This document shows positions 14,001-44,679 of a stretch of 64,000 nucleotides of DNA, in pieces. The stretch comes from Macrostomum lignano. Lineage: Eukaryota. The notes under the pieces were generated by a model that worked only from the letters and a program-made list of their open reading frames with translations, ran no database searches and was not told where the DNA came from. The DNA lies in assembly GCA_002269645.1 (NCBI GenBank), contig NIVC01000056.1, forward strand, positions 1,173,370 to 1,237,369. The letters run 5' to 3'. Both the position numbers and the translations under genes were made by a program. Within the stretch, counting starts at the first letter, position 1, and each line of letters starts with the position of its first letter.

Positions 14001-17000
14001 CACATTCTATAATGTTCTGAGTTGGTGTCTAACACATTCTATAGTGTTCTGAGTTGGTGTCTAACACATTCTATAGTGTTCTGAGTTGGTGTCTAACACT
14101 TTAGGGTGTTCTGAGTTGGTGTCTAACACATTCTATAATGTTCTGAGTTGGTGTCTAACGCATTCTATAATGTTCTGAGTTGGTGTCTAACGCATTCTAT
14201 AATGTTCTGAGTTGGTGTCTAACACATCCCGCATCCAATTTTACAGGTGAGACAGATCGTACGCAGGCGCTTTTTCTCATCCGCCAAGTTGACCGTGCGG
14301 CCAACTAAAAAAGGCCAACGGGAAATAGACGAAAGCCACCATTTATATCCGTACAAGTACCTAACCAACAAGGAGGTTGATAGTATCCATGGCGACGCGT
14401 TTCTAAAAATTCAACAAGGCCAAAAAGATGGGTTAGTGACCTACGAGCTGCATATGGACGATAAGCCTACTAGGCGACAGCGAGTGGACATTGTCACCTA
14501 TTCGTCCGAGGCCAAGCAGTACTTCTATCGGGACGAGTACAGCGCCCTCGCTCGGGCCTGGAATGCTCAACGATTTCAAGCTTTAGATTATGCGCTCGAG
14601 AAACTGCTCTATCCCACTTTGCGCCGCCAACTGGAGGGAAGAATTATTCAAGAGGCTGGAGATGGTTAGTCTTTATTGGCTTGATATTATTCTCCACGTC
14701 TGCGTGTTCCTGGCATCTAAGTGTTCTTTCTTAGAATTTGAGTGTTCTTTCTTAGAATCCTGTAGTTATTTCTTAGAATTTAAGTGCTCTTGCTTAGAAT
14801 TCGAGGGTTTTTTCTTAGAATCGAAGTGTTGCTTCTTACAATTTAAGTGTTCTTTTTTAGAATTTGTGTTTTTTTCTTAGAATTAAAGTGTTCTTTCTTA
14901 GAATTTTAGTGTTCTTTTTAAAAAAAGTCAGCTTTCTTAGAATATAAGTTTAAGAGTACTCGTATAAGTTCTTACAACCTATTTCTCATTTCTTGAAATT
15001 CACTTGTACTTTCTTAGAATCAAAGTGTACTTTTTTAGAATACATGTTCCCTATCTTAGAATTTGAGCATTTTTTTCATTCCCTGTTCCACTTGAACCTT
15101 CAAGATTATACTAGCGTTGTACTAGCAAATGTTAAAAGTCGAATAGTTAGAAGTCAGGCCAATCCTCATTACACAACAGAGCTTTCCCAAACACCAATCC
15201 ACAGGCATCAGCCGGTCGTGCAGCCTAAAGATTAGCAATTGGCTCAAGTTCGCGCCCTACCCGGCTGGCGGCCTGGATGGCGCCGGCGGCGAGCACAGGC
15301 ATCGAGCCGACTCGTCGAGTCGTAGACGCGACAGGCTCGCTAGAGTTATGGGCGTAGCCTACAGCACAGATAGAGAGATTGCAGCCTACGCTTCGGTTAT
15401 TAATTCAAACGGCGAAGTGCTGGATTTCTTGAGGCTGCCGTTCCTGCTGGCTAATAAGAAATCGCAACGCGAGGAAACTGCGAAGAATAAGGTATGAACT
15501 AGACAGAAATTATGTACTTGTTTATAGTATTCCGCATTATTTAAATTAATTTTTTTAAAAAAACACAATGTTCGTTATAGTCTACTGTTTTGGTCATCAT
15601 GTAAGTAGTCAAGTAGCGAATTTTAAAGCTATAATTTAACAAAAAAGTGATCTTTCACTGCCAGGCTCGCGAGCTTCACCTCATCAAGAAGCTAATCGCC
15701 AAGCATCGCCCAGACGTTATCGCTGTTGGCACCGAGTCCAAAGAGGCCCTGACTATTCAGCAGGAGCTTCGCGAACTCGCCCAGGAACTCCTAGCCGAGG
15801 GCTTAGCAACTAACTCGAGCGTCCATCTGGTTGACAACGAGCCGGCCCGAGTGTTTGAGAAATCCCGGCGCGCCGAGAAAGAATTGCCAACTTATCCAGA
15901 AATTCTGCGACAGAGCGTCTCGGTTGCTAGGCGACTGCAGGATCCCCTAGTGGAGCTGGCCGGCTTGGTTAATGCCGATGAGGATATCCTGTGCTTGAGG
16001 ATGCATCCTATGCAGGTTGGTTGCTATAAAGCTTTGCTCTTATGCCCCCAGTTGCTCGGCCAGCCTCCCAGCTCCCCAGTTGCTGGGCCAGCCTCCCAGC
16101 TCCCCAGTTGCTGGACCAGCCTCCCAGCTCCCCAGTTGCTGGGCCAGCCTCCCAGATCCTCAGTTGCTGGGCCAGCCTCCCAGCTCCCCAGTTGCTGGGC
16201 CAGCCTTCCAGCTCCCCAGTTGCTGGGCCAGCCTTCCAGCTCCCCAGTTGCTGGGCCAGCCTTCCAGCTCCCCAGTTGCTGGGCCAGCCTTCCAGCTCCC
16301 CAGTTGCTGGGCCAGCCTTCCAGCTCCCCAGTTGCTGGGCCAGCCTTCCAGATCCAGGTAAGTTATTGGACAGAATAGAAGTCACGTGACTGCTCTCAGC
16401 CAATAGCGACTTACATGTGTGTGTTGCCAATAGAAACGGCCGGGTGATTACCAAGGTTGCGCTTGTATGGCCATTGCCATCCCTACATCTCACTCACATT
16501 TCTGTCCTTTTGGCTCCATTCTCAAAACGACCTCTATATATTTTAGATTCTGAGATTCCCTTCGGTTGTTTAGACTGCACCACAAGATTTCCCATAATTA
16601 CACCTTATTGGAACCTCAGGTCAGCTGAAATCCTCAATCCATTCAATCCCAGGACGCGGTGCCCCGCGACCAGCTGCTATCGGCCCTGACCCTGGAATTC
16701 GTCAACAAAGTAAACGAAGTCGGTGTTGACGTGAACCGCTGCGTAGACTTGCCAAACTACGCCGCCCTGCTGCAATTCGTATGCGGACTGGGGCCTCGAA
16801 AAGCTGGCGATATTGTTAGCAAGCTGCGCTACTCCGGCCAGCGGCTGCACAATCGGGTGCCGCAGATTATCGACCTACTGCGGATGGGTCCCGTTGTGTT
16901 CATCAACAGCGCCGGTTTCATACGCATCGACACTGAGGCGGTTGAGAACGAAGCGCCGCACGCTCAGACAGACATACTCGACGCTACCCGAGTGCATCCG

Positions 17001-20000
17001 GAGTCCTACGAGCTGGCTAGAAAGATCGCTATGGATGCCGTTGATGCCGACGATGCTGCTGACGACGAGGAGGCTGCCAAATCTGCTCTGCTGGAAGTGA
17101 TGGAGCATCCGGACAGGCTGAAGGAGCTGGATATTGATGCGTTTGCCGAGGAGTTGAAGCGACAGGTTGGAAACTTGTTTTCTGGTTGGACTTTCGGGGT
17201 CATCTGGTTCAGGGTTTGGGTCAGCTGGTTCAGCGTTTAGGTCAGCTGGTTCAGCGTTTGGGTCAGCTGGTTTAGGGTTTGGGTCAGCTGGTTCAGGGTT
17301 TGGGTCAGCTGGTTTAGGGTTTGGGTCAGCTGGTTCAGGGTTTGGGTCAGCTGGTTCAGGGTTTGGGTCAGCTGGTTAAGGGTTTGGGTCAGCTGGTTCA
17401 GGGTTTGGGTCAGCTTGTTCTAGGTTTGGGTCAGCTGGTTAAGGGTTTGGGTCATCTGGTTCAGGGTTTGGGGCAGCTGGTTCAGGGTTTGGGTCAGCTG
17501 GTTCAGGGTTTAAGTCATCTGGTTCAGGAGTTGGGTCAACTGGTTATTTTCAGCCGGTTAAATGGTTAGGCAAGATTCGGGTCACCTGTGCACAAATCAA
17601 GGTCAACTATTTCTCGCCCACCCCAGGAGTACGGCGAGAAGCACATAACCCTGTACGACATTCGCAACGAGCTGTGCCAACCCTACAAAGATCTTCGAAT
17701 TGAATATTCTCCGCCAAATTCCGAGGAGCGTTTCAACCTGGTCACCAGGGAGACTCCAGACACGTTCTACATCGGCAAGCTGGTAGACTGCACCGTGATG
17801 GGTTTCGCGCGCAGGCGGCCGAAACCGGACCAATTGGAAAATGCCAACCCTATTCGCAATGAGGAGACGGGCAATTGGGTCTGCCCGTTCTGCGGCCTGT
17901 CCAATTTTGTGGAAGTCAACCAAGTCTGGTCGCATTTCGATGGTCAGTCGTGTGAGGGCGAACCAGTAGGAGTTCGAGTGCAGCTCGACAACGGATTGTC
18001 TGGATTTATTGGCACCAGGAATCTGTCGGATAAGTCGGTTGTTAATCCTACCGAGCGAGTGGCCGTGGGCCAGCAACTGCACGCCAGGATTATGAAGATT
18101 GATATTGAAAATTTTCGAGTAGATTTAACTAGTAGAAGCTCGGATCTGAAGGATACGGCGTTTAAGTGGAAACCGCCTAGGGACGCTTGCTTTGATGAAG
18201 ATGCTGAGGCTGTCGACCTGCAGGTGAGTTGCGGGCGCTGAAACCCGTGGAAATGTCATTCCAGATATTTATTCCAAAATACCCCAATAAATTTCTCGAA
18301 TATACCAATAAGCTCGTGGACTTGTTTAAAATACCCAATTAGATTCCTTTAAAATACCCCATCAGTTTCCTTTATAATACCCAATTAGATTCCTATAAAA
18401 GACCCCATCAGATTCCTTTAAAATACTTCATTAGATTCCTTTAAAATACCCCATTAGATTCCTTTCAAATGCTCCATCAGATTCCTTTAAAATACCTTTT
18501 TAGCCTCCTATAAAATACCTCATTAGATTCCTTTAAAATACCCCATTAGATTCCTTTCAAATGCTCCATCAGATTCCTTTGAAATACCTTTTTAGCCTCC
18601 TATAAAATACCTCATTAGATTCCTTTAAAATACCCCATTAGATTCCTTTAAAATACCTCATTAGATTCCTTTAAAATACCCATTAGATTCCTTTAAAATA
18701 CCCATTAGATTCCTTTAAAATACCCATTAGATTCATTTAAAATACGCTATTAGATTCCTTTAAAATACCCATTAGATTCCTTTAAAATACCCCATTAGAT
18801 TCCTTAAAAATATTCCATTAGATTCCTTTAAAATACCTCATTACATTCCTTTAAAATACCCATTAGATTCCTTTAAAATACCCATTAGATTCCTTTAAAA
18901 TACCCATTAGATTCCTTTAAAATACCCCATTAGATTCCTTAAAAATATTCCATTAGATTCCTTTAAAATACCTCATTACATTCCTTTAAAATACCCATTA
19001 GAATCCTTTAAAATACCCCATTAGATTCTTTTAAAATACCCAATTAGATTCCTATAAAAGACCATCAGATTCCTTTAAAATACTTATATTATATACTATA
19101 TTAAAGACATTTAATACTATATTTAAAATACTATATTAAAGAATCCTCTATAGTACACTATTCGATCACTGTAAGTATGTTGGCAATAACCTTGCAAAGT
19201 TAAGCACAATTGGCTGCGGTTAGTACACAGGTTCTACAATACCATCTCAATTTAGCTTCACAATAATCCTACAAAATATTTTCAGTCCGAGGAGGACAAG
19301 CGCAAGGAGACCAGGCCAACCTACGTGAAACGGGTGATCGATCATCCGAATTTTCACAACGTCACGTATCGCGACTGCGCCAAACTGATGCACAGCTTGG
19401 ACCTTGGCGATGCCGTGTTCCGGCCCAGTTCTAAAGGCACCGATCGGCTGACGCTGACCTGGAAGATTGAAGACGGCATTATTCAACACGTTGAAGTGCA
19501 AGAACGAAATAAGCAGAACGATTTCTCTTTGGGCAAGACGCTCCTTATTGAGGTTGGTGCTTCATTTAAAATGAACTGTGACTGTTGGGTCACTGTTGAG
19601 TCACTAGCGCATCATGAGTTGCAGAATCGTAAAATAGTCTCGGAAAGAGTTGTCCAGATTGACGCAGATTCGCTTTAGACGCAACTCAGTGATTCTAAGA
19701 GTCTAGAGTCACTTCTTTTCTATTTTACCTGTGCTACCTGCCACGACTCTGAAACTACTATGGGACGCTTCTTGGCTTCTACCTCTTTACCTACCTCTCT
19801 ACCTACCCCTTTACCTACCTCTCTACCTACCCCTTTACCTACATCTCTACCTACCCCTTTACCTACCTCTCTACCTATCCCTTTACCTACATCTCTACCT
19901 ACCCCTTTACCTACCTCTCTACCTACCCCTTTACCTTCCTCTTTACCTATCCCTTTACCTACATCTCTACCTACCCCTTTACCTACCTCTCTACCTATCC

Positions 20001-20903
20001 CTTTACCTACATCTCTACCTACCCCTTTACCTACCTCTCTACCTACCCCTTTACCTACCTCTCTACCTACCCCTTTACCTACCTCTTTACCTATCCCTTT
20101 ACCTACATCTCTACCTACCCCTTTACCTACCTCTCTACCTATCCCTTTACCTACATCTCTACCTACCCCTTTACCTACCTCTCTACCTACCCCTTTACCT
20201 ACCTCTCTACCTACCCCTTTACCTACCTCTTTACCTATCCCTTTACCTACCCATTTATCTACCCCTTTACCTTCCTATTTACCTACCCCTTTACCTTCCT
20301 ATTTACCTACCCCTTTGCCTACCTCTTTACCTATCCCTTTACGTACCCATTTATCTACCCCTTTACCTTCCTATTTACCTACCCCTTTGCCTACCTCTTT
20401 ACCTATCCCTTTACCTACCCATTTATCTACCCCTTTACCTTCCTATTTACCCACCCCTTTACCTACTACAGGGCGAAGAATTCGAAGATCTAGACGAAAT
20501 AATCGCCCGCTATGTGCAGCCAATGGCGGCCTACATTCGCGACATCAGCATGCACAAGTATTACGTCAGGCCGGCGCCTGGCGCCTCCGGCGTCGCAGCT
20601 ATCGACGACAGTTTGCGCCAAGCTAAACAGGCCAGGCCAACTACCATTCCCTACAGTCTGTCGGCTGTGACCAATATGCCTGGCAAATTTCTATTGGCCT
20701 ACCTGCCTAGGAGTAATGTACACCGCGAGTACATCACTGTGCGGCCTGGCGGGCTGCGCTATAGGGGCAGGCAGTTTGCCAGCTTGAATCAGTTGTTAGC
20801 CTGGTTTAAGCAGCACTATAGAGAGCCGCCGCCTAGCGCTGCTAATGCGCCCGGTTCGGCCCTGATGACCCCGGCTGGCTCTGTGATTTCGGCTAGAATG
20901 TGA
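8077..20903 (+). CDS. SPT6: Transcription elongation factor/histone chaperone SPT6, 12 exons, 1694 aa
   Basis: Exons inferred by hand, all GT-AG and frame-consistent (5085 nt): 8077-8956, 9820-10400, 10829-11179, 12787-12983, 13288-13498, 14247-14664, 15205-15491, 15665-16015, 16653-17165, 17627-18223, 19286-19552, 20472-20903. Hallmarks: acidic N-terminus, [32 protein letters not shown], YqgF-region [14 protein letters not shown], Hh[37 protein letters not shown]1 with CPFC insert, tandem SH2 KRVIDHPNF / [21 protein letters not shown] at 20921. Confidence 0.96.
8965..9755. repeat. SPT6 intron 1 minisatellite, ~16-bp unit (cactggggcagacagr) with variants
   Basis: Direct inspection; source of the spurious [15 protein letters not shown] ORFs. 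Confidence 0.95.
10497..10715. repeat. SPT6 intron 2 minisatellite, 33-bp unit (gagcgattccctatgacccactcttatctatct), ~6.5 copies
   Basis: Direct inspection. Confidence 0.95.
11220..12720. repeat. SPT6 intron 3 minisatellite, 21-bp unit (ggatctgaatctcatagcttr), ~70 copies
   Basis: Direct inspection; source of the GSESHSL ORFs. Variants are spatially clustered. Confidence 0.95.
13035..13190. repeat. SPT6 intron 4 degenerate ~25-bp repeat (ttgaactaatcgccctgtacataca)
   Basis: About 6 degenerate copies seen. Confidence 0.75.
13505..14228. repeat. SPT6 intron 5 minisatellite, 30/32-bp unit (gagttggtgtctaacacattctatagtgttct), interrupted by a MITE
   Basis: Direct inspection. Confidence 0.95.
13727..13934. 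mobile_element. 208-bp MITE with ~58-bp terminal inverted repeats (CCC...GGG ends), apparent 2-bp TSD (CT)
   Basis: ccctagagacagacaatgcaaattaaatgagattataatatattatattttttgcagaa vs the reverse complement of ttctgcaaaaaatataatatattataatctcatttaatttgcattgtcagtctccaggg (2 mismatches). The host repeat gtgtCTaacac is split as gtgtCT[element]CTaacac. Confidence 0.88.
14715..15065. repeat. SPT6 intron 6 degenerate ~21-22-bp repeat (ttcttagaatttaagtgttct)
   Basis: Direct inspection. Confidence 0.8.
16044..16335. repeat. SPT6 intron 8 minisatellite, 28-bp unit (gccagcctyccagctccccagttgctgg), ~10 copies
   Basis: Direct inspection. Confidence 0.95.
16380..16468. mobile_element. Truncated copy (right arm) of the MITE at 34580-34747
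   Basis: cgacttacatgtgtgtgttgccaatagaaacggccgggtgattaccaaggttgcgcttgtatg matches caacttatatgtatgtgttgccaatagaaacagccaggtgattcccaaagttgcgcatttatg. Confidence 0.75.
17205..17545. repeat. SPT6 intron 9 minisatellite, 21-bp unit (gggtcagctggttcagggttt), ~16 copies
   Basis: Direct inspection. Confidence 0.95.
18320..19085. repeat. SPT6 intron 10 minisatellite, 22-23-bp unit (cattagattcctttaaaatacc)
   Basis: Direct inspection. Confidence 0.95.
19776..20468. repeat. SPT6 intron 11 minisatellite, 12-bp unit arranged as 24-bp dimers (ctacctacccctttacctacctct)
   Basis: Direct inspection; runs up to the 3' splice site at 20471. Confidence 0.95.
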
Positions 20904-21184
20904 CACCTGTTTAATTCATTAATAAACTCAACTAAATTGTACTTTGTTTAGCGTTCATCAATCTGAGGATTTATTTGTTGCTGCCTGTGTGTGTTTTTTA
21001 ATTTGTTTTTATAGTCGTAGTTTGGTTGTACTTTTGTTGCCCTTTTTTATACAGAAGCTTTGGGAGCATTGAATCAAACAATTCACCTTTATTGTTTGTA
21101 ACAAGGTTCCGACCTTGAAATCATCTAGGGTCCTTGGGTCATTCAAGGTCAAGTAAAGTGGGAGATTTAGTGTATGATTTGAGA

Positions 21185-22175
21185 GTGGGGTCATCAAGTG
21201 GGGTCATTCAAGGTCAAGTCAAGTGCCAGGTCTAGGTGTATGCTTTGAGAACGGGGTCATTCAAGGACAAGTCAAGTGGCAGGTCTAGGTGTATGATTTG
21301 AGAACGGGGTCATTCAAGGACAAGTCAAGTGGCAGGTCTAGGTGTATGATTTGAGAACGGGGTCATTCAAGGTCAAGTCAAGTGGCAGGTCTAGGTGTAT
21401 GATTTGAGAACGGGGTCATTCAAGGACAAGTCAAGTGGCAGGTCTAGGTGTATGATTTAAGAACGGGGTCATTCAAGGTCAAGTCAAGTGGCAGGTCTAG
21501 GTGTATGATTTGAGAACGGGGTCATTCAAGGACAAGTCAAGTGGCAGGTCTAGGTGTATGATTTGAGAACGGGGTCATTCAAGGACAAGTCAAGTGGCAG
21601 GTCTAGGTGTATGATTTGAGAACGGGTTCATTCAAGGTCAAGTCAAGTGGCAGGTCTAGGTGTATGATTTGAGAACGGGGTCATTCAAGGACAAGTCAAG
21701 TGGCAGGTCTAGGTGTATGATTTGAGAACGGGGTCATTCAAGGACAAGTCAAGTGGCAGGTCTAGGTGTATGATTTAAGAACGGGGTCATTCAAGGTCAA
21801 GTCAAGTGGCAGGTCTAGGTGTATGATTTGAGAACGGGGTCATTCAAGGACAAGTCAAGTGGCAGGTCTAGGTGTATGATTTAAGAACGGGGTCATTCAA
21901 GGACAAGTCAAGTGGCAGGTCTAGGTGTATGATTTGAGAACGGGGTCATTCAAGGACAAGTCAAGTGGCAGGTCTAGGTGTATGATTTGGGAACGGGGTC
22001 ATTCAAGGACAAGTCAAGTGGCAGGTCTAGGTGTATGATTTGAGAACGGGGTCATTCAAGGACAAGCCAAGTGGCAGGTCTAGGTGTATGATTTAAGAAC
22101 GGGGTCATTCAAGGACAAGTCAAGTGGCAGGTCTAGGTGTATGATTTGAGAACGGGGTCATTCAAGGTCAAGTCT
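21185..22175. repeat. Intergenic minisatellite, 53-bp unit (ggggtcattcaaggacaagtcaagtggcaggtctaggtgtatgatttgagaac), ~18 copies
   Basis: Period measured from 21253 to 21306. Confidence 0.95.
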
Positions 22176-22879
22176 AAATCGAAATTTTCCGAATGCAAAA
22201 ATTTCCAATCCCAAATGTCAATGGGTCATTTAAGGTCAAATGACTTTTTATTTTAACCACGTTGCCTGCCTTAACTCTTCAAATAAAATTACAAAAAACT
22301 CAATAAACCTCGCTGCGTCCTTATTGGTGGGCAAAGTGTAACATTTTCGTTATCATAGTGTAATATTTGTACTTTTCTCTTCCTAATTAATAAATTTGGC
22401 CAGCATTTGCGCTCAGTCAATTCTACTAGAATCCTTATTACTATAAGCATGAAAAATTCAATACGAAAGCAAAACTTGAGCTCTGTTAAAGCAAGTTCCC
22501 TATTAAAGTGCATTACAACAGTACAACAACACTGAAAGTAATTATAAATTTGTGTAATTTTGTATGCCTTGCGTCATTCTTTCTCGATTTTGGTGTTCTG
22601 TACAAAAAAACTCGATAAAATAAAAACACAAGTTTTCTGCTGCTATTCTAATTACTATTATTCCAATTAAGGAATTTTGAGTAGTCGGTGGTTCTCATTT
22701 TTTATGCTATCAGTGTACGAGCATAAGTTTATTCGGTCAACTATTATATTTAATAAATCCGTTTATCACATGCTTCTACTTCTACTTGGCTTTCAGTTAT
22801 CAGTAGCAAGTTTCGAACATTTCAAGTATATTTTGGACGGTTCATCCTTACATCATCTTCAGGTTCATCTCTATGCTAT

Positions 22880-23755
22880 GGTGTGGGGCTGATGCTATGG
22901 TGTGGGGCTGATGCTATGGTGTGGGGCTGATGCTGTGGTGCGGGACTACTATGGTGCGGGACTACTATGGTGCGGGACTACTATAGTGTGGGACTGCTGT
23001 GGTGTGGGACTTCTGTGATGTGGGACTTCTGTGATGTGGGACTGCTTCTGTTGTGCGGGACTGCTTCTGTGGTACGGGACTGCTTCTGTGGTGCGGGACT
23101 GCTTCTGTGGTGCGGGACTGCTGTGGTGCGGGACTGCTGTGGTGCGGGACTGCTTCTGTGGTGCGGGACTGCTTCTATGGTGCGGGACTGCTTCTGTGGT
23201 GCGGGACTGCTTCTGTTGTGCGGGACTGCTTCTATGGTGCGGGACTGCTGTGGTGCGGGACTGCTGTGGTGCGGGACTGCTTCTGTGGTGCGGGACTGCT
23301 TCTGTGGTGCGGGACTGCTTCTGTGGTGCGGGACTGCTTCTGTGGTGCGGGACTGCTGTGGTGCGGGACTTCTGTGGTGCGGGACTGCTTCTGTGGTGCG
23401 GGACCTCTGTTGTGCGGGACTGCTGTGGTGCGGGACTGCTGTGGTGCGGGACTTCTGTGGTGCGGGACCTCTGTTGTGCGGGACCTCTGTTGTGCGGGAC
23501 TGCTGTGGTGCGGGACTGCTGTGGTGCGGGACTTCTGTGGTGCGGGACTGCTGTGGTGCGGGACTGCTGTGGTGCGGGACTGCTGTGGTGCGGGACTGCT
23601 AACCTGTGGTGCGGGACTGCTTCTGTGGTGTGGGACTGCTTCTGTGGTGCGGGACTGCTGTGGTGCGGGACTGCTTCTATGGTGCGGGACTGCTGTGGTG
23701 CGGGACTGCTTCTGTGGTGCGGGACTGCTGTGGTGCGGGACTGCTAACCTGTGGT
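22880..23755. repeat. Intergenic minisatellite of interspersed 16-bp (gtggtgcgggactgct) and 19-bp (+tct) units
   Basis: Direct inspection; source of the CGAGLLWCGT ORFs in all three frames. Confidence 0.95.
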
Positions 23756-24462
23756 GGGGGTAGGCATATGTCTGATGCGGATATCTCTACTTATAAAAAT
23801 CAAAATAATATATAAAGTAGATGTGACACTTCCAATAAAAGTTCAAGTGGAACTTTTCAAAGTTCGGTTTGTTTAAGCGGTTTTGTGCGCTGCGGGGGGT
23901 GGGGTGGGCGGCAGCCGTCACGATTACGTCTCGCACCACCTCGAACTCGTCTTGCTGGCTTCCTTTACCTTGTCCCTCAGTCTTATCTTGTCTTACTCAT
24001 TTGTGTCTATTGTTGCTTTGAAAGGTTAGGCGGTAGAAGCAGCCAATTAGAAATGGACCTGCCCAGCCAGTTCAAGTCGAATCAAGGACACCCTAAACCT
24101 GTATTTGGATTGGAATACTTTCGTGTTTTTCTGTTTTTGTTTTACTTTACTAGATTTATTATAACGGTAAACTTTGTTAGGTTTTAGAAGTGTTATTTTA
24201 AGTACGAGCATTTTTATAAATTTCTGAACTTGGAATTCAAAATAGGCCTTTCGTGTAGTTGTAGGTATTGTTGGCCATTCCAGAGTTCTAGAGTTTTTTA
24301 TGGGTCTCCATGGTCGACCACACCCCCTTTAAATGCCCGTACTAGTTTTGTTGTCTGTTTTCTCTCCTTAAGAGCCAAAGCCTCAGGCCACGCCTCCAAT
24401 TTCATATATCATTCAATCGTACCTAATTTTTTATTCTCAGCCAAGCCGGCCAACCAGCAGTC

Positions 24463-27400
24463 ATGCGTTCAAGCATTAGAAACATACTATCGTTAAATAC
24501 GACAAAATTATCTATTCGGCGTTGCTTAGCAACAACTGACGCCTCAGCCGCGTCGTCTAGTTCGAGTTGTTCAACGTCTTTGCCAAGTGCTGTCGCTGCT
24601 GGAAGCTTCCGTTTCGCTGATCTGTCAATCGAGCGAACCGAACAGCCCAAGCCGAAGCCGCCCAATGACAGTCTGGTGTTTGGCAGCCAGTTCTCCGATC
24701 ACATGCTGTTGGCCAGGCATTCCAAGTCTGCCGCTGGTTGGATGGCGCCTCGCATTCAACCCTTGCAGAGTCTGCCGTTGCATCCGGCGTCCAAGTGCTT
24801 GCACTACGCTTTGGAGTGCTTCGAAGGATTGAAGGTTATAAATTTGTGGCTGGGATGCTCAGTTTGATTGTATCAACTTGTAATGGGATTTTGATGTTGT
24901 AGGGATGAGATTCTGATGCTGTAGGGGTGAGATTTTGATGCTGTAGAGGTGAGATTCTGATGCTGTAGGGGTGAGATTTTGATGCTGTATGGGTGAGTTT
25001 TGATGCTGTAGGGGTGAGACTTTGATGCTGTATGGGTGAGACTTTGATTCTGTATGGGTAAGATTTTGATGCTGTAGGGGTGAGATTCTGATGCTGTAGG
25101 AGTGAGATTTTGATGCTATAGAAGTGAGATTCTAATGATGTAAGGGTGAGATTTTGACACTGTAGGGATTAGATTCTGATACTGTAGGGGTGAGCTTTTA
25201 ATGTTTTAGGGGTGAGATTTTAATGCTGTATGGGTGCAATTCTGATGCTGTAGGGATGAGATTCTGATACTGTAGGGGTGAGATTCTGATGCTGTAGGGG
25301 TGAGATTCTGATGCTGTAGGGATGAGATTTTGATGCGGTAGGTGAGATTCGATGCTTTAGGGGTGAGATTCGATGCTGTAGGGGTGAGATTCGATGCTGT
25401 TGGGGTGAGATTCGATGCTGTAGGGGTGAGATTTAGATACTGTAGGGATGAGATTCGGATGATGTAAGAGTGGTTTTAATGCTCTAGGAGAAGATTTTGA
25501 GACACTGTATGGGATAAGATTTTGGTGATGGGCGAAGTTCCAACCCCAACCCCACAGGCTTTCCGTGGCGTTGACGGCCGGGTCCGCCTGTTCCGCCCCA
25601 TGGAGAACTGCAAGCGGATGCTGCGCAGCGCCGAACGCTCAACCCTGGCCTCGTTCGACCCCGCCGAGCTGCACCGATGTCTGCGCGAGCTGATTCGGCT
25701 GGACGCCGACTGGGTGCCGGATTCGCGCGACTGCTCGCTGTACATCCGGCCTACCATGATCGCCGCCGAGCCGCGCATCTCCGTCGGGCCCGCCGAGGAG
25801 ACCCTGCTGTGAGCCGCTCGTGTGTCCTGCTGCCCGCACGAACTCATTTATGAACTCACTCATGAACTCATTTATGAACTCATTCATGAACTTATTTATG
25901 AACTCACTCATGAACTCATTTATGAACTCATTCATGAACTCATTTATGAACTCACTCATGAACTCATTTATGAACTCACTCATGAACTCATTTATGAACT
26001 CATTCATGAACTTATTTATGAACTCACTCATGAACTCATTTATGAATTCATTCATGAACTCATTTATGAACTCACTCATGAACTCATTTATGAACTCACT
26101 CATGAACTCATTCATGAACTCATTCATGAACTTATTTATGAACTCACTCATGAACTCATTCATGAACTCATTCATGAACTCATTTATGAACTCACTCATG
26201 AACTCATTTATGAACTCATTCATGAACTCATTTATGAACTCACTCATGAACTCATTTATGAACTCACTCATGAACTCATTTATGAACTCACTCATGAACT
26301 CATTAATGAACTCACTCATGAACTCATTCATGAACTCATTCATGAACTTATTTATGAACTCACTCATGAACTCATTTATGAACTCACTCATGAACTCATT
26401 CATGAACTCATTCATGAACTTATTTATGAACTCATTCATGAACTTATTTATGAACTCTCTCATGAACTCATTTATGAACTCATTCATGAACTCATTCATT
26501 AACTCATTTATAAATTCACTCATGAACTCACTTATGAACTCATTTGTGAACTCACTCATAAACTCACGTATAAACTCAACTCATGAACTCACTCGACTGA
26601 TTGCTTAATCACCCACGCAACCGTCACGGTTTCCTCCTGCGCTTTATTACTCAGTTTCTTTCGCAGAATCTTTCGCTAACCATTGGTTATAGTTCAACTC
26701 CTAAGATGATAAATTCTATTACTATTATGTTACCTCCCGCCACGAAAAATTCACTTACAGGTACGTGATCACGGGGCCGGTGGGGCCCTATTATCCAACC
26801 GGGTTCAAGCCCGTAACGCTGCTAGCCGATCCAACTTATTGCCGAGCTTGGCCGGGTAAATTTTATGACTAACTGATTCTAATGCTTTTATACTACTTGT
26901 TGATTGCAGCTAGGAATATGAATAAAGTGTCTTATCTTTTAGCGTGTTGTAATATGCGTTTTAGTTGGTTTTGCAGCTGCCTGTTAACAGTAGGTGGTAC
27001 ACTTGAATGTTAGAACTCACTGGCTGTTTAATATGGGTTTTATTGTGTTACAGAACTTACAGCACAGTATGTTTAATGTTGGGTCTCACAGGTGTTATGT
27101 GTTATAGCTGGTGTTACACATGTCATTATTTACATGAGTTCATGTTACAGGTGTTGTTATTGGTGTTACAGGTGTTCTGAATAGTGTTACATGTGTTATA
27201 AACGGTGTTACAGGTGTTATGAATAGTGTTACATGTGTTACAAATGGTGTTACAGGTGTTATGTTGGTGTTATGATTAGTGTTACAGGTGTTTGAGCATT
27301 AGGATAAACCTCTCCCTAACCTGCCCCTATTCTCCTCACCCAACCACCAGGCGGCGTTGGCAACAACAAAATGGGCGCGAACTACGGACCTACCTGCTAC

Positions 27401-27874
27401 GTACAGTTGCAGGCCGCCGCCCAGGGCTGCCAACAGGTGCTGTGGCTATACGGGCCCGAGCACCGGCTAACAGAGGTTGGCACCATGAATTTGTTCATAT
27501 TCTGGCGCAGCAAAGACACTGGCAAGCCTCAGCTGGTGACGCCGCCGTTAAACAGCGGATTAATCCTACCCGGCATTGTTCGGGACAGCCTATTGCGTCT
27601 AGCTCGCGAATGGAACGAATGGGAAGTATTAGAACGGGACATCACTATGGGCGAACTAATTGAAGCTATCGATAGCGGCCGGCTAATGGAAATGTTCGGC
27701 TCTGGCACCGCTTGCATTGTTAGCCCGGTTAGCGGAATTAAATACGACGGCAAAGTGATCCAGGTGCCCACTATGAGCCAGGGCGCCCCGGTTACTATGC
27801 GCTTCTTTAAGACGCTGACGGATATTCAGTACGGCCGGATCAAGGATCACCCCTGGGCCGAGATTGTCGCCTGA
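24463..27874 (+). CDS. BCAT: Branched-chain amino-acid aminotransferase (PLP-dependent class IV), probably mitochondrial; 4 exons, 413 aa
   Basis: Exons 24463-24834, 25558-25808, 26761-26855, 27351-27874 (1242 nt, frame-consistent). Motifs [62 protein letters not shown] (PLP Lys), [33 protein letters not shown]-terminus is Arg/Ser-rich with no acidic residue in the first 25 aa (presequence-like). AATAAA near 27954. Confidence 0.95.
24885..25465. repeat. BCAT intron 1 minisatellite, 22-bp unit (gatgctgtaggggtgagattyt)
   Basis: Period measured from 24915 to 24937. Confidence 0.93.
25838..26590. repeat. BCAT intron 2 minisatellite, 12-bp unit (tyatgaactcay)
   Basis: Direct inspection; source of the MNSF/ELIH ORFs. 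Confidence 0.95.
27085..27290. repeat. BCAT intron 3 degenerate gtgttaca-based repeat
   Basis: Repeated gtgttacaggtgtta / gtgttacatgtgtta. Confidence 0.7.
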
Positions 27875-30680: not shown

Positions 30681-31102
30681 CTTCTTCTCCTTTCTCTCCT
30701 CTCCCTTCTCTCCTCTCCCTCTCCTGTCCTCTCCCTTCTCCCATCTTCCTTCTCTCCTCTCCTTTCTCTTATTGGGGGACAAAGCCAAGAATTCAACATG
30801 TAACATGACTAAATTCCTACATTTCTATTATTTTGAGAATTCGTATTGTCAGCGCTCATTTTGGCGCGGCAGCTATTCCTTTTGGCGCCGCAGGCATTCT
30901 TTTAGCGCCGCAGGCACTCATGTGGCGCCGAATGCGCTATATTTTGGCGCCCTGAAGAAAAATTATTGGTTACCACAACAGGTCACAAGGGGGTTGGGGG
31001 ACATAGCATTGGCATGTCCCCCATAGCTTTTACTGGGGGGGGGGCATGTCCCCCTGTCCCCCCGTAGCGATGCGCCTGCTGTACACTGTACAATGTCTAA
31101 AC

Positions 31103-37065: not shown

Positions 37066-39973
37066 TGGGAAATGATCCCATTAATTGATATTTCATTTGA
37101 TATTTTGCTTTTAATTGTTGTTTCTATGATTCATTGGAATAAATTTGTTATATAATATATTTTACCATGTGGCAATTTTGTTATATTGCTTTTTTGACAT
37201 GTCACTTTTCTATGAATGGCTGTTTTGATATATATTTCAAGCATTGCATTCTGTTACACTGCACTATGTTGCACTAAAGGCCGCTTCACAGAAAATGTGC
37301 CATGCCACAGGGTCATTTTGAAAACATGCCAGATAGCCATCTGCGATTTAGCAACTTCCAATAAGGCCAAAGTGAAGGCAATCAATCAAAAAGCAAAAAC
37401 TCTTTCAAACCTAGTGATTTGTTTACTTCAATACAATAAATATAGATGCACTCTATATATGATAGATGATAATGTATCTGTTTATTTAGCCAAGAATATA
37501 AACCACCATTAGGCAAGATCTCTGTAGTTGTAATCTATAACCAAATACAGATAAAACTGATACAGGAATGATAGGATAAAAGCTAATTTTACTTTTGTTG
37601 CAATGTAATAGTGCTGTGGGTCAGACTTGAAGATGTTGCAAGCTAGATCTGGTCCATGTGCCAGTTTCCTAACCCCTGGTCTAAAGCATATGCTAGCAAA
37701 CTCTGGCCTTTGCCTCTTTCTCTCTGTCCCTTTGAAACTTCTCTCCTCTTTCTTTCTCCTTTCTTTTCTTATCTATCATCTCATTTTCTTTGTCATTTAT
37801 TCATTCCTCTCTCTTCCCTCATCTCCTTTCTCCCTCTTCTCTTTCTCCTTTCTCTTCTCTCCCTCTCTTTACTTAGGAGTCCATAGCAAACAAATTTGTA
37901 CATACCCAGACACACAGAGTTTCCATTTTTAAAGTTGAGATCTATAGCCTCTTAGAATCTATTTTGACTACTTATAAAGTCACCATATCAATAACAGCTG
38001 CCTATTTAAGAGTCAACCTTAGGCTTAGAGGGCATAAGAAAACTGCAGTAATATTTTTCTCCAGTTTTTTATTATAGTCAATGTCTAACTTTTTCCTCTG
38101 ATAGTAAACATAGTTTCTATATATTAAATGTTTTTTATTGGGAAACAAAGCTAACCTGTTAAAAAGTAAAAAAGAAAGAATTTTATCATAATTTGAGTGT
38201 ATTTACTTAAATATATAGGTTAAGACTTCAAAAAATGTTTATTGTCAAAATTTGTATAAATGTCAAAATTTATTTTATAGTACTTATAAAGCATCTAATG
38301 TACATATATTGCCTATGTCTATGACTAGTAAGCAAAGACTTAATCTTTAGAACATTCAACTTAGTCTATTTCCTGCTTTTGGATACAATACAATAACACA
38401 AACTAAAAATAAAGATTGAACATAAGAAATATAAATGAGCAAAAAATTTATTCATATAGGTTATCTTTAAGACTAGAAATGTATGCCAATGTACACGACA
38501 GTCAAAATAAACCATTATTATTTAGAAAACAGCCCTATAAGGTAATTAAAACAAAACCTTAAGCATATACTAGTATAATTTATTTGAAAATATTTTTTAA
38601 AAAATTTCTATAAGAAAGTACTAGTTTAGTATGTTTTATGTAGCTGGCACACCTAAGATTTTAAAATAATAGGATATATCTAAAAAATTGCTGTCAAAGA
38701 AAGTAGTTTTTTATGATCTTTTGCTTTATATAAATAGTAAAAAAGTACCTATACCATTAATAATCAAAAATAAAACTACAAGATATCACAAAATCACAAT
38801 ATAGTTCTATTCTACATATTTGTTCAGACATATTAGTAGCAATATGCCATATATGTGTAGTGTCTAGATGTGTTTTAATTGTGCCTACTTATATGCAAAA
38901 ATATTTTTATGGCGTACAAATAATATAAAAAACAATAAAAGCTATATAAATTAACTGTTGCATTATAATGGTAAAGCAGTTGTCATTTATTTGTATAGTT
39001 TTTGTTTTATGTAACATTTGAGCAATATAAAAAAATATTTGGTTAACTATATAGACTTTAGTGAGTCATTTGAAAAAATATTTCTTAGAGAGCTAGATGC
39101 TTCATATCTTTATCAATTCTCTATAAAGCTACAAGTATTATTTAGAATAAATAAAGTTTTGAGCATAAAAATCAAACACAAGTAGTAAAATGGTCATTGG
39201 TCATCAAAGGCATTGCATTTAGGCTAATAGAAGACAAAAAATGAGATTATAAAAAGTAAACTTTTTTGTGAAGTAATTTTAAATTTTTCTATATTCAAAT
39301 GATAAAACAATTTTTTCTAAGGGTGTCCCATGTAGAAAAGGAAAATTTTTTTGTTATAGTTATTAGTATTGCTATTTTAAAACAAATAAGATACTCGTAA
39401 CTTGATTTTCTGTAGTTAAGATAACATAGTAGAAAATAATTTATCTTAGAATTAATTGAACCCAACCATTTTAATGTTAATTTCTAAATAAAGTAATTTT
39501 AGCATATCTATTGAGCCATTCATAAATGTATTTTCAAACATTTAATAGAAAAGATTTATCTTCTTAAAGATAAGATTCTTTTTTCTGTCAGTTAGATTAT
39601 TAAAACTATATTCTGACAGATATTTTAACTTATAGGTCTTTCTTAACTGTTAGTATTGCCCTTTTTATTGTCATAATGTCGTTTTGAATATAAAATTTGG
39701 AACTTTACAAAAATTAAAATACTCTAGTTGGAAGCAGCTAATAAATGAATAATGTAGTGTCTGCTTTGTTATGTTTTATTTATGCTACCAGTTGACACGT
39801 GGATATTTGAAATTGTAATGTTTAGTTTAGTTTATAAGTGAAGGCTGATTAAAATATAAAAAATGAATGCTACTGGTTTTAAATGCACAGAAAAACGCAT
39901 CTAAATACATGTGTTGTTTGCCATATTTCCTTAAACATTTTATTATTTTGTATGTGCTACTTTTAGTAGTTGA

Positions 39974-40225
<252 letters not shown>

Positions 40226-41685
40226 TCCCGGCTTGATCTAATGCTCATTGCTTGTTGCTTTTTTCCTATGTATCTTTTGCGTCTGAATAAATACTATATT
40301 ACTGCCATTGTGACGACAACTGTAATACGAGTACCCAACTGAAATTGGCAGGTTTATTGGTGTCAATACTGCCAATTATTAACATTTTAATATTACCATT
40401 AATATTGCATTCTAACTCAAATTCGTTTTTGTTTGACTTTTGCGTAAACTTCTTGTCAATGTTAAGCATTGCTTTTATTTTAATTTTGAAAAGAAAAATA
40501 AACTTTGTTTTAACTGAGCAAAAAGGAGAAAAAAAATCAAACGTTTTCGACTTCGAATTGGGACACTAGGATTGTCTGCCTAGCTTAGAGAACAGCAAAA
40601 AAATACTAAATCTATAATACATCAACTTTAATAGCTATGAAGACAAAAAATTATATTTACTAAGGTTTAGCTTATTTATTTATCAACATCCGGTTTAGTG
40701 GTTGGTTATTAAATTGGAAATTAATTATTGGTGTGCTTTAGTCGTTGTTTTTTTAAATAATTTTTTTTAATAATGCTTTCCTTGGTTAAGTGGCCAAACT
40801 ATCAATTAGCTTCCCAACCGAACATTTGACCGAATTTCTAAACTAGGCCAGCCTAACTGCCCTCGCTCTGTCCTGCCTGTGTCGTCGGGGCTTGACCCTG
40901 TCGTCGCTGCCGCAGGGTCAGTGCAGTACTGGCTACGTCAGTGTGACTGCCTCGCTTCTGGCCAAGCCATGTAAGTCGAATCATTAATTTAATATTTTGT
41001 TCAAAAGCACTTACAATTTCTTCTTTCGCACGCCTTGGTCGTAAAATTCCGTGTTAAAACTACATGCCATCATTACACGGTATTGGGTAGCTTACAGTTT
41101 CAATGCGGCCTACAAGGTAACGGCACTGGAAGATATTTTAGTCGTGTACTTACATGTATACTTGTGCTGTATAAGTAGTATGATACGCTGCGGCTTCTCG
41201 GGTACACTCTTTCATCATTCGGCAGTCTAATCGAATGTACAAATAAGTGAAATCCATCTTGTCCGTCTCCTATTGTCGGCGTTCGCACATTCACTAGGCC
41301 GCGTACAAGTACAACTCGTACAACTCTTTAACCATCGACGACTTGGACACCTTGGATCGACTCGGGCTGTCTGCAAAGCAGATTTCAACAAATTGTAGGT
41401 TTGCGGTCATCCTTGTCTGTCACATACCGAGTTGCCTTTGTCTGTCCCTCTAGCGTTTATGTCGTGCAGAATTTAAACTTCGGATGTCGTGTTACCCGTG
41501 CATGTACGAAATCGCCTCTGGAAGCCGCGTTACATGTACATGTACGGAAAATCGCCCTTGGTTCTACTGTGAATGTACATATGTATGTCGGGATACACGT
41601 ACGAAATCGCCCTTAGTTGGATGTCGTGTTACACACTTGCACACGTGCCTGTACATCTTGACTGCTCGTAACTATAATTAAGTAC

Positions 41686-41901
41686 ATGTACGCCTTCAAC
41701 CCATCGACCTATAAAACAGCAAAGAGCACAAAGAAAAAGTCGTCTGCAACAAGGACATCACCGGAGACCGACGAAACACAATCAGCTGCAGCCAACAATG
41801 ACACCGCAAAACATGCAAATCAACCCGCGTCGCCTACTGCGTCAACAAGCGGCATAAAATCTGCTACTGATAAGCCAGCTGCCAGAGAGAGGAGGCACTG
41901 A
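41686..41901 (+). CDS. Possible small Ala/Lys/Ser/Thr-rich ORF or exon (71 aa), perhaps a diverged relative of the array peptides
   Basis: Purine-rich, more GC-rich island; AAANNDTAK resembles ADANKDAAK (18/24 nt identity by eye). Low complexity, so weak. Confidence 0.3.
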   Translation: MYAFNPSTYKTAKSTKKKSSATRTSPETDETQSAAANNDTAKHANQPASPTASTSGIKSATDKPAARERRH

Positions 41902-42802
41902 TTCGAAAGCAACTGATGTCAATCAAGTTAAACTATTCTTAATAATTGGCATTCAAAAGTAACCATACCCTACTACACTACTACTACCCATACTACACGA
42001 GTCTGTATTATGTTCCATCCGCTCATTTATGCAGTACATACATGTATTCTATAATTAGCTAAAGCCAACTTTACAATTACGTTAGCATAAGAAATTTCAG
42101 TTAGTCTGCTCATATGCATATCATCTCTCTGTATTATTGCATTAAAAATTGCAATAAATTTTGAATAGATTAGACTTAAAGTGAGCATATCTGCAAGTTC
42201 CCTTATTTAACTACACCTGTGCGGTACATACAGCCTAGCCACACTTCTTAACTTCCATTTAGCTTACTCCATCCTTAAGTACATGTACTTCCTTGCCTTA
42301 AGTACATTTCTAGACATCTGTAGACCAGTTGCGGCAGCCATTGTTAAAGCTGCAGCCGGAAGACTTCACTGCGTTTCAATGACACGGTTTATCAAAGCGA
42401 CCCTAGTCTACAAAAAGAGAGCTATTGAAAATTATTGGTAGTTCCTTCATTCAGCAATTCAACTTTTCTACACAACTAATCTGTGGAAATGGAGTGTACG
42501 GCTCGAAAATGTATAATTTCTAGGCATCCCTTGCGAGCTGGTCGGGTCATCAGGTTTATCAATGCAACCAGCGTCGATCATTAGTTGTATGAGTAGAAAG
42601 AGTGAAATTCCTTTGGTATTTAGCTAAGTTATACTCTGGTTGGTAGCACTTAAAAATTCTAGCTAGCTACTTGATTAAGATGCACGCAGACTTCGTTCGC
42701 TGCTGTGTGTGTGTTGTTGTTGTGTGAGCACTATATGACTTGCTTACTGTCGCCCCGATTGCAGCTCTAAGCAGCTTTCAAGCACAAAAAGCAAAACACA
42801 GA

Positions 42803-42943
42803 ATGCCAGCCAAGCAGAACCAGCAGCAGGGAGCCGGCAAGCAGCAGGCAGCCGATGCCAACAAGGACGCCAAGCAGCAAAAGCAGCAGCAACAACAACA
42901 GCAGGCTGGTGGCGCTGCCGCCAAGGCCGGTCAGAAGAAGTGA
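42803..42943 (+). CDS. Array micropeptide A, 46 aa (MPAKQNQQQGAGKQQAADANKDAKQQKQQQQQQQAGGAAAKAGQKK), copy 1
   Basis: GC-rich island with codon usage like the host genes, A-rich context cacagaATG, upstream acceptor ttgcag. The paralog B keeps the frame and shared motifs while differing at synonymous sites. Confidence 0.78.
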   Translation: MPAKQNQQQGAGKQQAADANKDAKQQKQQQQQQQAGGAAAKAGQKK

Positions 42944-43666
42944 TGCGATTTCAGAGAGATCAATTGTTAGGTGTGCTCTGCACCGCATGACAGCCAGGCC
43001 TACTATTGGCGTGACTGAGTGGAACTCTGAGCTCTCTCTATACCTGTACAGTATACTATAATCTGTCCGCATTAGCGTATCGTCTTTGTTAGGGCTAAAG
43101 AGTCGCTGCATCCAGCTCTGAAACTGCAATTAGGTTACTTACTGTATTCTGTACTGTACTAACCTTACTCACGTGCTGACGAAAGCTTATAGTTGTAAAT
43201 TGATCCTTTGAAAAAAGTTGTTTGATTGTAGAATAATTACAGTAGCATTTCCTAATTACATATTGGACAGTATTTTTAAAGCAAGCAGGTGTTTTCGGCT
43301 CTCGTTCTTTAAATGCTCTCTGTTTCCCTATATGCTTAGGATGTTTTGTGTTAGATCAGCAGTTGCAGACAGAGAAAGGGGGCATTACTTGCATTTGGCT
43401 TGATATAGCATCCTCTAGATTTCGTTGTCCAGCACATCCAACTAGAGGCTAGATATGCACCAATGTTCCTTGTAGAGCTGCACTGCTCCAATAAGCGGTT
43501 AAATAAGAAGAAGTGCCCTTTAGGACATATCTAGATAGTTTTTCTAATGAGGATGTACAGCCAGCTAGCTATACTTGAAGTTGACGTTGGTCACCTTGCA
43601 AACCGCAGCTGCTCGCTTCTCAAATTGCAGCTTCAAGCATCAGCTTCCTAATCTCAACAGACAAAC

Positions 43667-43792
43667 ATGCCTGCCAAGAAAGCCGCCGCCGACAAGAAGG
43701 CCGCCGATGCCAACAAGGACGCCGCCAAGCAGCAGCCGGAAAAAGCCGAGGGCGAGCAGGCCGCTGCCAAGGGCGGTCATAAGAAGAAGTGA
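43667..43792 (+). CDS. Array micropeptide B, 41 aa (MPAKKAAADKKAADANKDAAKQQPEKAEGEQAAAKGGHKKK), copy 1
   Basis: Below the ORF-track cutoff; context acaaacATG, in-frame TAA 15 nt upstream, GC3-rich codons; homologous to A. Confidence 0.78.
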   Translation: MPAKKAAADKKAADANKDAAKQQPEKAEGEQAAAKGGHKKK

Positions 43793-44679
43793 TCGATGTG
43801 CGTTGCGGATCGCGCTATACCAACCTGTATGCTGGCTTGATCGCGGCGCTCCTACCGACCTGTACGAGTTGCTGGATGCCTGCTGATCAAACTGCAACTT
43901 ATAGCGAATTGTAATTACATGTGCTGGCCGGATACTAATCAATGTTGCATCATACTCAGTTATTACATACTACACAACTGCAGTCTCTACAGCTCTGCAC
44001 TGTAAAGCGCAGACGCATTTTATACAGTACGTAAATCGTAGCCTGTCAGCCATGCTCTATACTATGGTACCAGCTGCTCTGTTCTGACGGGCAGTCATGT
44101 ACTTGTCGTAAATTACATTGTTGTACTGGGTGCATCAGTTACTTACAAAGTTGTTGCAACAACCAACAATCGTTTTTCGGCTTGAGCTCTACTTTTACCA
44201 ATATTTTTGCTGCTTCCTAGTCACGTATATAGTTTCATGCTCCTCAAGGCTTAGGGGCCTCTCGCTCACAGGCTGACAGTGGGGCTGTTTCAGTTTATGT
44301 ATAAGAGTTAGACATTTTGCAGTGCAATAATTAGCTACTGGGCTTTTGTAGACTAATCTGTGGAAATGGAGTATACGGCTCGTAAATGTATAATTTCTAG
44401 GCATCCCTTGCGAGCTGGTCAGGTCATCAGGTTTATCAATGCAACCAGCGTCGATCATTAGTTGTATGAGTAGAAAGAGTGAAATTCCTTTGGTATTTAG
44501 CTAAGTTATACTCTGGTTGGTAGCACTTAAAAATTCTAGCTAGCTACTTGATTAAGATGCACGCAGACTTCGTTCGCTGCTGTGTGTGTGTTGTTGTTGT
44601 GTGAGCACTATATGACTTGCTTACTGTCGCCCCGATTGCAGCTCTAAGCAGCTTTCAAGCACAAAAAGCAAAACACAGA

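Follow-up and report, generated by a model that had tools for sequence, protein, structure and literature searches.

The A-B array and its two peptides

The DNA analysed here is a stretch of 64,000 nucleotides (nt) from Macrostomum lignano, a free-living flatworm, taken from the forward strand of contig NIVC01000056.1 (positions 1,173,370 to 1,237,369; assembly GCA_002269645.1) and referred to below as the window. Its final part is occupied by a head-to-tail tandem array whose repeat unit carries two short open reading frames (ORFs), A and B (Table 1). A and B are very probably real coding paralogs within a spliced tandem array. They make up a lineage-specific orphan pair of intron-less micro-protein genes that is essentially unannotated. 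Three deposited M. lignano gene models contain sequence of this kind: P0001 (PAA46468.1), P0002 (Mlig030344g1, 87 amino acids (aa)) and P0003 (Mlig001540g3, partial, 100 aa).

Table 1. Position and character of the array, its coding sequences (CDS), processing sites and nearest conserved gene, numbered from the first letter of the window
Feature	Position	Strand	Description
A-B array	42475-64000	+	head-to-tail, 1877-bp unit; ~11.5 units; 12 A and 11 B ORFs
Micro-protein A, CDS	42803-42943	+	46 aa, 4.85 kDa, isoelectric point (pI) 10.2, net charge +6
Micro-protein B, CDS	43667-43792	+	41 aa, 4.22 kDa, pI 9.8, net charge +5
TTGCAG acceptor of A	42759-42764	+	exon from 42765; junction in P0002 and P0003; fits [T/C]TNCAG
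5' leader of A	42765-42802	+	38 nt, CTCTAAGCAGC...CACAGA
TTGCAG acceptor of B (predicted)	43625-43630	+	exon from 43631; motif and ATG-relative position as in A
5' leader of B	43631-43666	+	36 nt, CTTCAAGCATC...ACAAAC
Exon segment in the B 3' region	43942-44026	+	GTACGT donor 44027-44032; joined in P0002 to the next A acceptor (44641/44642)
Unique upstream exon	40847-40970	+	starts right after AG; GTAAGT donor 40971-40976; joined in P0003 to an A acceptor
TMA7 gene	40031-40225	+	intron-less, 64 aa; PF09072, E 4.9e-20; ribosome-associated, lysine-rich; 2.4 kb upstream of the array

Self-matching at a period of 1877 nt begins at about 42475, and only the first 70 nt carry extra mismatches (three). 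The 11 complete units differ by a single 2-bp indel, and all A products are identical to each other, as are all B products. Between window positions 30847 and 44400 the sequence matches the deposited contig from 1,204,216 with 100% identity over 13,554 bases. The window ends where the contig ends (position 1,237,369), so the array is truncated by the assembly. Two more contigs, NIVC01003793.1 and NIVC01004846.1, also end within such arrays; at three contig ends in all, the PacBio assembly breaks because of the array's length.

The array on NIVC01003793.1, flanked as in the window, shows 99.9% identity, which fits the duplicated large chromosome described for the DV1 line of M. lignano (PMC8629364). 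Units on NIVC01004846.1 are 97.5% identical to those of the window. Their A protein is identical, and their B product (B') has 40 aa, with the substitution N16S and one alanine fewer; intact copies number five of five for A and five of six for B'. The two sets of units are separated by 27 fixed substitutions over 1877 nt, none of them in A, while B has one non-synonymous substitution and a 3-bp in-frame deletion. The outermost B copy of NIVC01004846.1 (380-660 of the contig-end locus) carries a 1-bp deletion that shifts the frame and an altered acceptor (TTGCTG), and within 1120 nt it has four further private substitutions. Either decay of a copy at the array's edge, escaping homogenisation, or a sequencing error at the contig end could explain it. 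P0001 corresponds to this frameshifted copy and is the only form of B in the protein databases.

The A peptide reads MPAKQNQQQGAGKQQAADANKDAKQQKQQQQQQQAGGAAAKAGQKK and the B peptide MPAKKAAADKKAADANKDAAKQQPEKAEGEQAAAKGGHKKK. A is the Gln-rich version (16 Gln, 11 Ala and 8 Lys; Lys 17%, Ala 24%), and B the Lys/Glu-rich one (13 Ala, 11 Lys and 6 Asp/Glu; Lys 27%, Ala 32%). Neither contains arginine, and acidic residues number 2-6. Many of the replacements are Lys/Gln exchanges (AAG/CAG), and the charge is nearly equal. Both peptides are strongly hydrophilic, with a grand average of hydropathy (GRAVY) of -1.81 for A and -1.47 for B, and glycine makes up 10.9% and 7.3% of residues, respectively. 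Met1 and the alanines are their only hydrophobic residues. A preliminary description of this DNA, made from the letters alone, had listed as shared the segments MPAK, AADANKDA(A)KQQ and AAAK(A/G)G(Q/H)KK. These are present as described, except that B ends in HKKK, with three lysines, and not in HKK. Its remaining statements on the peptides hold as well: the CCA/CCT codon difference at Pro2, the Q7 tract of A and the EKAEGE segment of B, the net charges, and the observation that, Met1 aside, no aromatic, Cys or large aliphatic residue occurs in either.

AlphaFold2 (AF2) models, built on an alignment of only the two sequences, predict a helix over residues 3-42 of A, with a mean predicted local distance difference test (pLDDT) score of 72 and values of 81-85 over residues 11-30. 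For B, helices are predicted at residues 3-22 and 27-36, broken at Pro24, with a mean pLDDT of 65 and a best value of 75 (residues 11-20). The helical core proposed in the preliminary description is matched in that the modelled helices span the conserved core; the low-to-moderate confidence makes this weak support. In the segment AADANKDA, read off the sequence, alanines at i, i+3 and i+7 would fall on one helix face as an alanine stripe.

Paralogy and coding signal of A and B

Compared by blastn, the two half-units match over 200 columns, from 45 nt 5' of the ATG through the stop codon, with 69% identity (E 2.6e-15). Because both peptides are of low complexity, composition-preserving shuffles matter for judging their similarity. 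The local protein alignment scores 88, compared with 43.2 +/- 6.4 in such shuffles, and none of 3000 shuffles reaches 88 (a distance of 7 standard deviations); in global alignment, none of 2000 shuffles scores as high. An independent repeat finder recovers a 52-nt core (77% identity) and the 16-nt motif ATTGCAGCT(C/T)(T/C)AAGCA (88%), at spacings of 852 and 866 nt, and with the latter the short element ttgcagct..aagca that had been noticed in both leaders from the letters alone.

The similarity is confined to the TTGCAG acceptor, the 36-38 nt leader and the CDS, and it ends at the stop codon. The rest of the 864- and 1013-nt halves cannot be aligned, and the comparison yields one co-linear match only, consistent with the flank divergence reported in the preliminary description. 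That description had also called the unit an ancient dimer. A and B are indeed paralogous and old, but the term overstates the relationship, as only about 190 nt of the two halves are related.

The differences between A and B follow a coding pattern. Across 39 aligned codon pairs, the Nei-Gojobori method (NG86) gives a non-synonymous divergence (dN) of 0.25 and a synonymous divergence (dS) of 0.76, a ratio of 0.33, with 11 synonymous changes at 23 sites against 20 non-synonymous changes at 94 sites (Fisher p 0.012). Synonymous differences occur in five of the 24 columns with identical residues. Indels keep the frame: between A and B, the three distances that separate the conserved blocks change by 12, 6 and 3 nt, and the length of the non-coding leaders by 2 nt. 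Both ATGs have A at position -3, and start, core and stop are in frame at homologous positions. Codon choice is biased, with GCC used for 83% of alanines and AAG for 89% of lysines, compared with 48% and 54% in neighbouring exons. The earlier proposal of paralogs with coding-type conservation, frame-keeping indels and synonymous differences is consistent with these results, and coding-type conservation of A and B is moderately well supported by the sequence comparison.

Searches for relatives point to a family restricted to this species. A word-indexed homolog search with an A/B profile returned P0001 only, and a query made of the leader and A returned P0002 and P0003 only. An exact-sequence look-up of A, B and the neighbouring TMA7 in a gene-position index gave no record. 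Pfam holds no family matching A or B at E values up to 10, the LEA_4 11-mer repeat profile included, and no match to either was found among PDB sequences. Screening of the unit against Rfam and with a tRNA scan yielded no RNA family and no tRNA, and among its other ORFs Pfam gave one sub-threshold SH3_2 match and no domain. The gene identifiers and accessions of the models were not found in the M. lignano literature searched (full texts, and supplements of expression papers). Copies beyond this locus occur only in the sister arrays of M. lignano itself.

Several observations weigh against the interpretation of A and B as conserved genes. All six frames are largely open through composition, which makes ORF length and openness weak evidence. 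Full HMMER, run against 1.84 billion cluster representatives, returned the three M. lignano models only, and a scan of Joint Genome Institute (JGI) metagenomes matched 600 patterns, none of which was confirmed. With no homolog outside M. lignano, the argument for purifying selection derives from one pairwise comparison over 39 codons. Comparison of the sister arrays has no power on selection: each CDS is expected to carry about two substitutions, and the spacers often contain 3-bp indels as well. The polyadenylation signals AATAAA and ATTAAA are absent from both strands of the 1877-bp unit. Consensus polishing of the repeat may, in addition, inflate the identity between units.

Some of these observations would fit a transcribed satellite or long non-coding RNA (lncRNA) locus, in which the ORFs are untranslated by-products of GC/CAG-rich sequence and the A/B similarity reflects an element acting at the RNA or DNA level, such as an acceptor region with a processing signal. 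The +1 frame likewise gives shared peptides (e.g., MPTRTP..RRSD), and the coding case is built on sequence and not on detected peptides. A non-coding array would, however, leave several features unaccounted for: the low dN/dS ratio and its significance, the homologous placement of ATG and stop with similarity ending at the latter, block spacings that differ by multiples of three next to leaders that differ by 2 nt, and a codon bias above that of neighbouring genes, together with the lack of an Rfam family. Taken together, these features make a non-coding array unlikely.

Chemistry and possible roles of the peptides

If translated as predicted, A and B would be abundant, soluble, unstructured-to-helical basic peptides without a hydrophobic core. 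Hydrophilins, as reportedly defined by Garay-Arroyo et al. in 2000, have more than 6% glycine and a mean hydrophilicity index above 1, and are said to accumulate under water deficit or osmotic stress. The glycine content and hydrophilicity index of both peptides exceed these two values, a likeness in composition. A and B resemble hydrophilins, 'Hero' (heat-resistant obscure) proteins and small late embryogenesis abundant (LEA)-like proteins in being very hydrophilic (GRAVY below -1.4), charged and helix-prone, in lacking a hydrophobic core and in apparently being required in bulk. They differ in having no sequence relationship to these proteins and in being much shorter than most of them; the likeness is one of composition only.

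The most likely role, proposed with low confidence, is that of a bulk-acting hydrophilin or 'Hero'-type shield, or of a binder of polyanions such as RNA, ribosomes or chromatin. A hydrophilin or polyanion-binding function, for which composition is the only basis, is doubtful when taken as a claim in its own right, and that narrow basis counts against it. A role as an enzyme or secreted signal is unlikely.

In another reading, A and B would belong to the sperm nuclear basic proteins or would condense chromatin as proteins resembling histone tails, amplified to satisfy a bulk need during spermatogenesis. Small size, basic pI (9.8-10.2), Lys/Ala-rich composition, tandem amplification and the lack of a signal peptide would all suit such a role, as would the AKKAAA-type composition, which we take to resemble that of H1 tails. 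The charge density is low, however, with lysine at 17-27%, no arginine, 2-6 acidic residues and a net charge of only +5 or +6 over 41-46 residues; neither peptide contains an SPKK-type motif, and the gene identifiers were not found in the searched supplements of M. lignano expression papers. In protamines, Arg and Lys usually account for roughly half or more of all residues. A and B, with the lysine contents given above, no arginine and acidic residues present, fall outside the protamine-like class, and a function in sperm chromatin is improbable.

Another family of short helical peptides that offers a parallel is the type I antifreeze proteins of flounder, which are Ala-rich single-helix peptides with Asp, Asn and Lys, encoded by many tandem gene copies. 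Members of that class have more than about 60% alanine and an 11-residue threonine periodicity. A and B share the short Ala-containing design, with predicted helices, and the tandem gene copies. With 24% and 32% alanine, no threonine and hence no such periodicity, they do not belong to the class; they also differ in not being secreted and in having no ecological rationale for antifreeze activity.

Array history, transcript processing and genomic setting

The duplication that gave rise to A and B is much older than the array, since the units are identical to each other and the flanks of A and B can no longer be aligned. An alternative is that gene conversion between the neighbouring paralogs, and not protein-level selection, kept the core alike, and that the core represents a conversion tract. 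The core GC(A/C)GCCGATGCCAACAAGGACGCC is identical at 23 of 24 nt, including a shared non-preferred GAT codon, and strong homogenisation of the array is evident. Conversion of a single tract is nonetheless hard to reconcile with three conserved blocks (N-terminus, core and C-terminus) interleaved with diverged, frame-preserving segments, or with a leader and acceptor that are conserved too, and it leaves the synonymous-over-non-synonymous excess unexplained. Gene conversion is therefore quite an unlikely source of the similarity. The preliminary description had also inferred a fixed 1:1 gene dosage. This ratio follows from an amplified unit that holds one A and one B, and it is therefore no evidence for a selected stoichiometry.

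In M. lignano, gene expression involves spliced-leader (SL) trans-splicing and operons, the largest reported operons having nine genes; trans-splicing there uses acceptors of the form [T/C]TNCAG, and ATG forms the 3' end of the 35-nt spliced leader (PMC8629364). Gene models of this species come from RNA-seq and transcriptome assemblies only; these were cut where trans-splicing and poly(A) addition had been mapped experimentally, and ORF calling followed (PMC5730564). The TTGCAG motif noticed in the preliminary description is real, and its role as a splice or trans-splice acceptor had been overlooked. P0002 joins the B 3'-region segment to the A leader and A, and P0003 joins the unique upstream exon to the same leader and ORF; both share the junction at which TTGCAG is followed by CTCTAAGC. 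A further model, of 58 aa, on NIVC01004846.1 starts 2 nt after the acceptor AG, in a frame that is open for nine codons further upstream. Its start despite this open frame indicates that the 5' end of the transcript lies at the acceptor.

The A acceptor is therefore used in three ways in the models: with the unique exon that precedes the array by 1.8 kb, with a donor in the preceding B 3' region, and as a 5' end. Since such models are built from transcripts only, they show transcription of the array and use of the A acceptor. Like the SL trans-spliced genes of M. lignano, A and B have an acceptor shortly before the ATG, with TTGCAG 38 nt (A) and 36 nt (B) upstream. Their spacing also resembles that of operons in this species, in which neighbours on the same strand lie less than 1 kb apart: 687 nt separate the A stop from the B exon, and 849 nt the B stop from the next A exon, 3' untranslated regions (UTRs) included. 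A spliced-leader ATG would read ML-stop at the A acceptor and MLQASAS-stop at the B acceptor. Because it soon meets a stop in both cases, the AUGs of A and B themselves must be used.

A donor-like GTGAG lies 41 nt before each A acceptor (42724-42764 and the corresponding positions in other repeats). It could define a very short intron in the 5' UTR, and hence a transcription start inside each unit. At the upstream exon, a spliced leader added at AG/GCC (40846/40847) would bring its ATG into the reading frame that runs through exon 1, the A leader and A, giving a 101-aa product. The 55-residue extension of this product contains no Asp or Glu, is rich in Ser, Leu, Ala and Arg, and resembles a targeting peptide; it may simply be UTR that is read in frame.

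That the true products are the longer proteins, with A as their C-terminal part (87 aa in P0002, 100 aa in P0003, or 101 aa through the spliced-leader ATG), is very unlikely: both models are deposited and the in-frame leader ATG with its acid-free extension would suit such fusions, but the two extensions are unrelated to each other, B has none, the leader ATG meets a stop after one (A) or six (B) further codons at their own acceptors, A/B conservation starts at the leader and ATG and not upstream, and an ORF caller would favour the longest ORF, the native ones of 41-46 aa having gone uncalled.

The picture that these observations suggest, with A and B as short coding paralogs, begins with an old duplication of one small gene that produced A and B. 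Later, an 1877-bp segment consisting of A, spacer, B and spacer was amplified into the near-homogeneous head-to-tail array. The array may be read as one or more long precursor RNAs that enter from upstream and are processed into short mRNAs through cis-splicing and trans-splicing of the spliced leader, as an operon would be. With one A and one B in each unit, output would scale with copy number and the A:B ratio would be 1:1 by construction. Two points count against this account of processing. The transcript models cover the A acceptor only, the B acceptor being assigned by motif and position, and the evidence for expression consists of transcript-derived gene models alone and is indirect. The odds of operon-like processing of the array RNA, which we infer from these models, are about even. 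The explanation as a whole, weighing the coding array together with its processing, is somewhat favoured.

Parallels for this organisation exist in other systems. With the alternating alpha/beta-tubulin arrays of trypanosomes and the SL-resolved operons of nematodes or flatworms, the locus has in common a homogeneous array in which a pair of paralogous genes takes turns head-to-tail, cistrons that each start at an acceptor at which a leader is added, and an equal dosage set by the unit. Unlike in those systems, the products here are orphan peptides of 41-46 aa, and the models include cis-splicing from upstream donors. Polycistronic transcription of the array is, moreover, inferred, and it would span at least 23 cistrons, compared with the nine-gene maximum in M. 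lignano (PMC8629364). The fullest version of the idea would make the array one operon-like transcription unit comprising 23 or more cistrons. Its input would come from upstream of 40847, resolution would be by cis-splicing and by trans-splicing of the spliced leader, and its output would be equimolar, lineage-specific micro-proteins that pair through an alanine-faced helix, a flatworm class, hitherto unrecognised and highly abundant, of peptides that protect or that coat ribosomes or chromatin; this version is decidedly improbable. A and B are a new uncharacterised case of tandemly amplified small hydrophilic protein genes in a trans-splicing genome.

The nearest conserved gene upstream is TMA7. 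TTGCAG lies 23 nt before its ATG, and AATAAA about 60 nt after its stop codon. Gene calling at this locus did not include it and no record of its product was found, which indicates that small ORFs are under-annotated in the assembly. TMA7 resembles A and B in being a small basic Lys/Ala/Gly-rich protein with a C-terminal G.KK, in its TTGCAG-leader-ATG layout and in its neighbouring position. It differs in showing no significant similarity to them, and A and B have no PF09072 match. On local alignment against shuffles (z -0.1 and 0.2), descent of A and B from this gene is rejected.

Within the 1.8-kb intron upstream of the array lies a 71-aa ORF (41686-41901, +) rich in Ser, Thr, Ala and Lys. 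For its stretch AAANNDTAKHANQP, blastn gives a weak resemblance to the B core (E 0.09). The ORF was considered as a decayed third paralog and rejected, as its protein alignment scores at the level of shuffles.

Further upstream, an SPT6-like gene (~8077-21000, +) and a branched-chain aminotransferase-like gene (24463-27874, +) contain a minisatellite of their own, each different, in nearly every gap between exons. These 13 arrays (8077-27874) repeat with a period of 16-53 bp and are 200-1500 bp long, and several ORFs in the region extend from exon sequence into repeats. Just upstream of TMA7, positions 38001-40000 have a GC content of 24%, compared with 42-46% in 40001-64000.

M. lignano serves as a transgenic model in research on regeneration and stem cells, and its annotation misses proteins as short as these. 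Among the search matches, the native 41-aa B has no deposited protein except the frameshifted copy, and A appears only with spurious N-terminal extensions. With identical copies numbering in the dozens, the pair probably ranks among the most strongly expressed products of some cell type, which makes it a cheap target for RNA interference (RNAi) and in situ hybridisation. The locus provides a test case for the transcription of tandem arrays in flatworms and their resolution by trans-splicing, for concerted evolution across a recently duplicated genome, and for the recognition of micro-proteins by paralog comparison alone.

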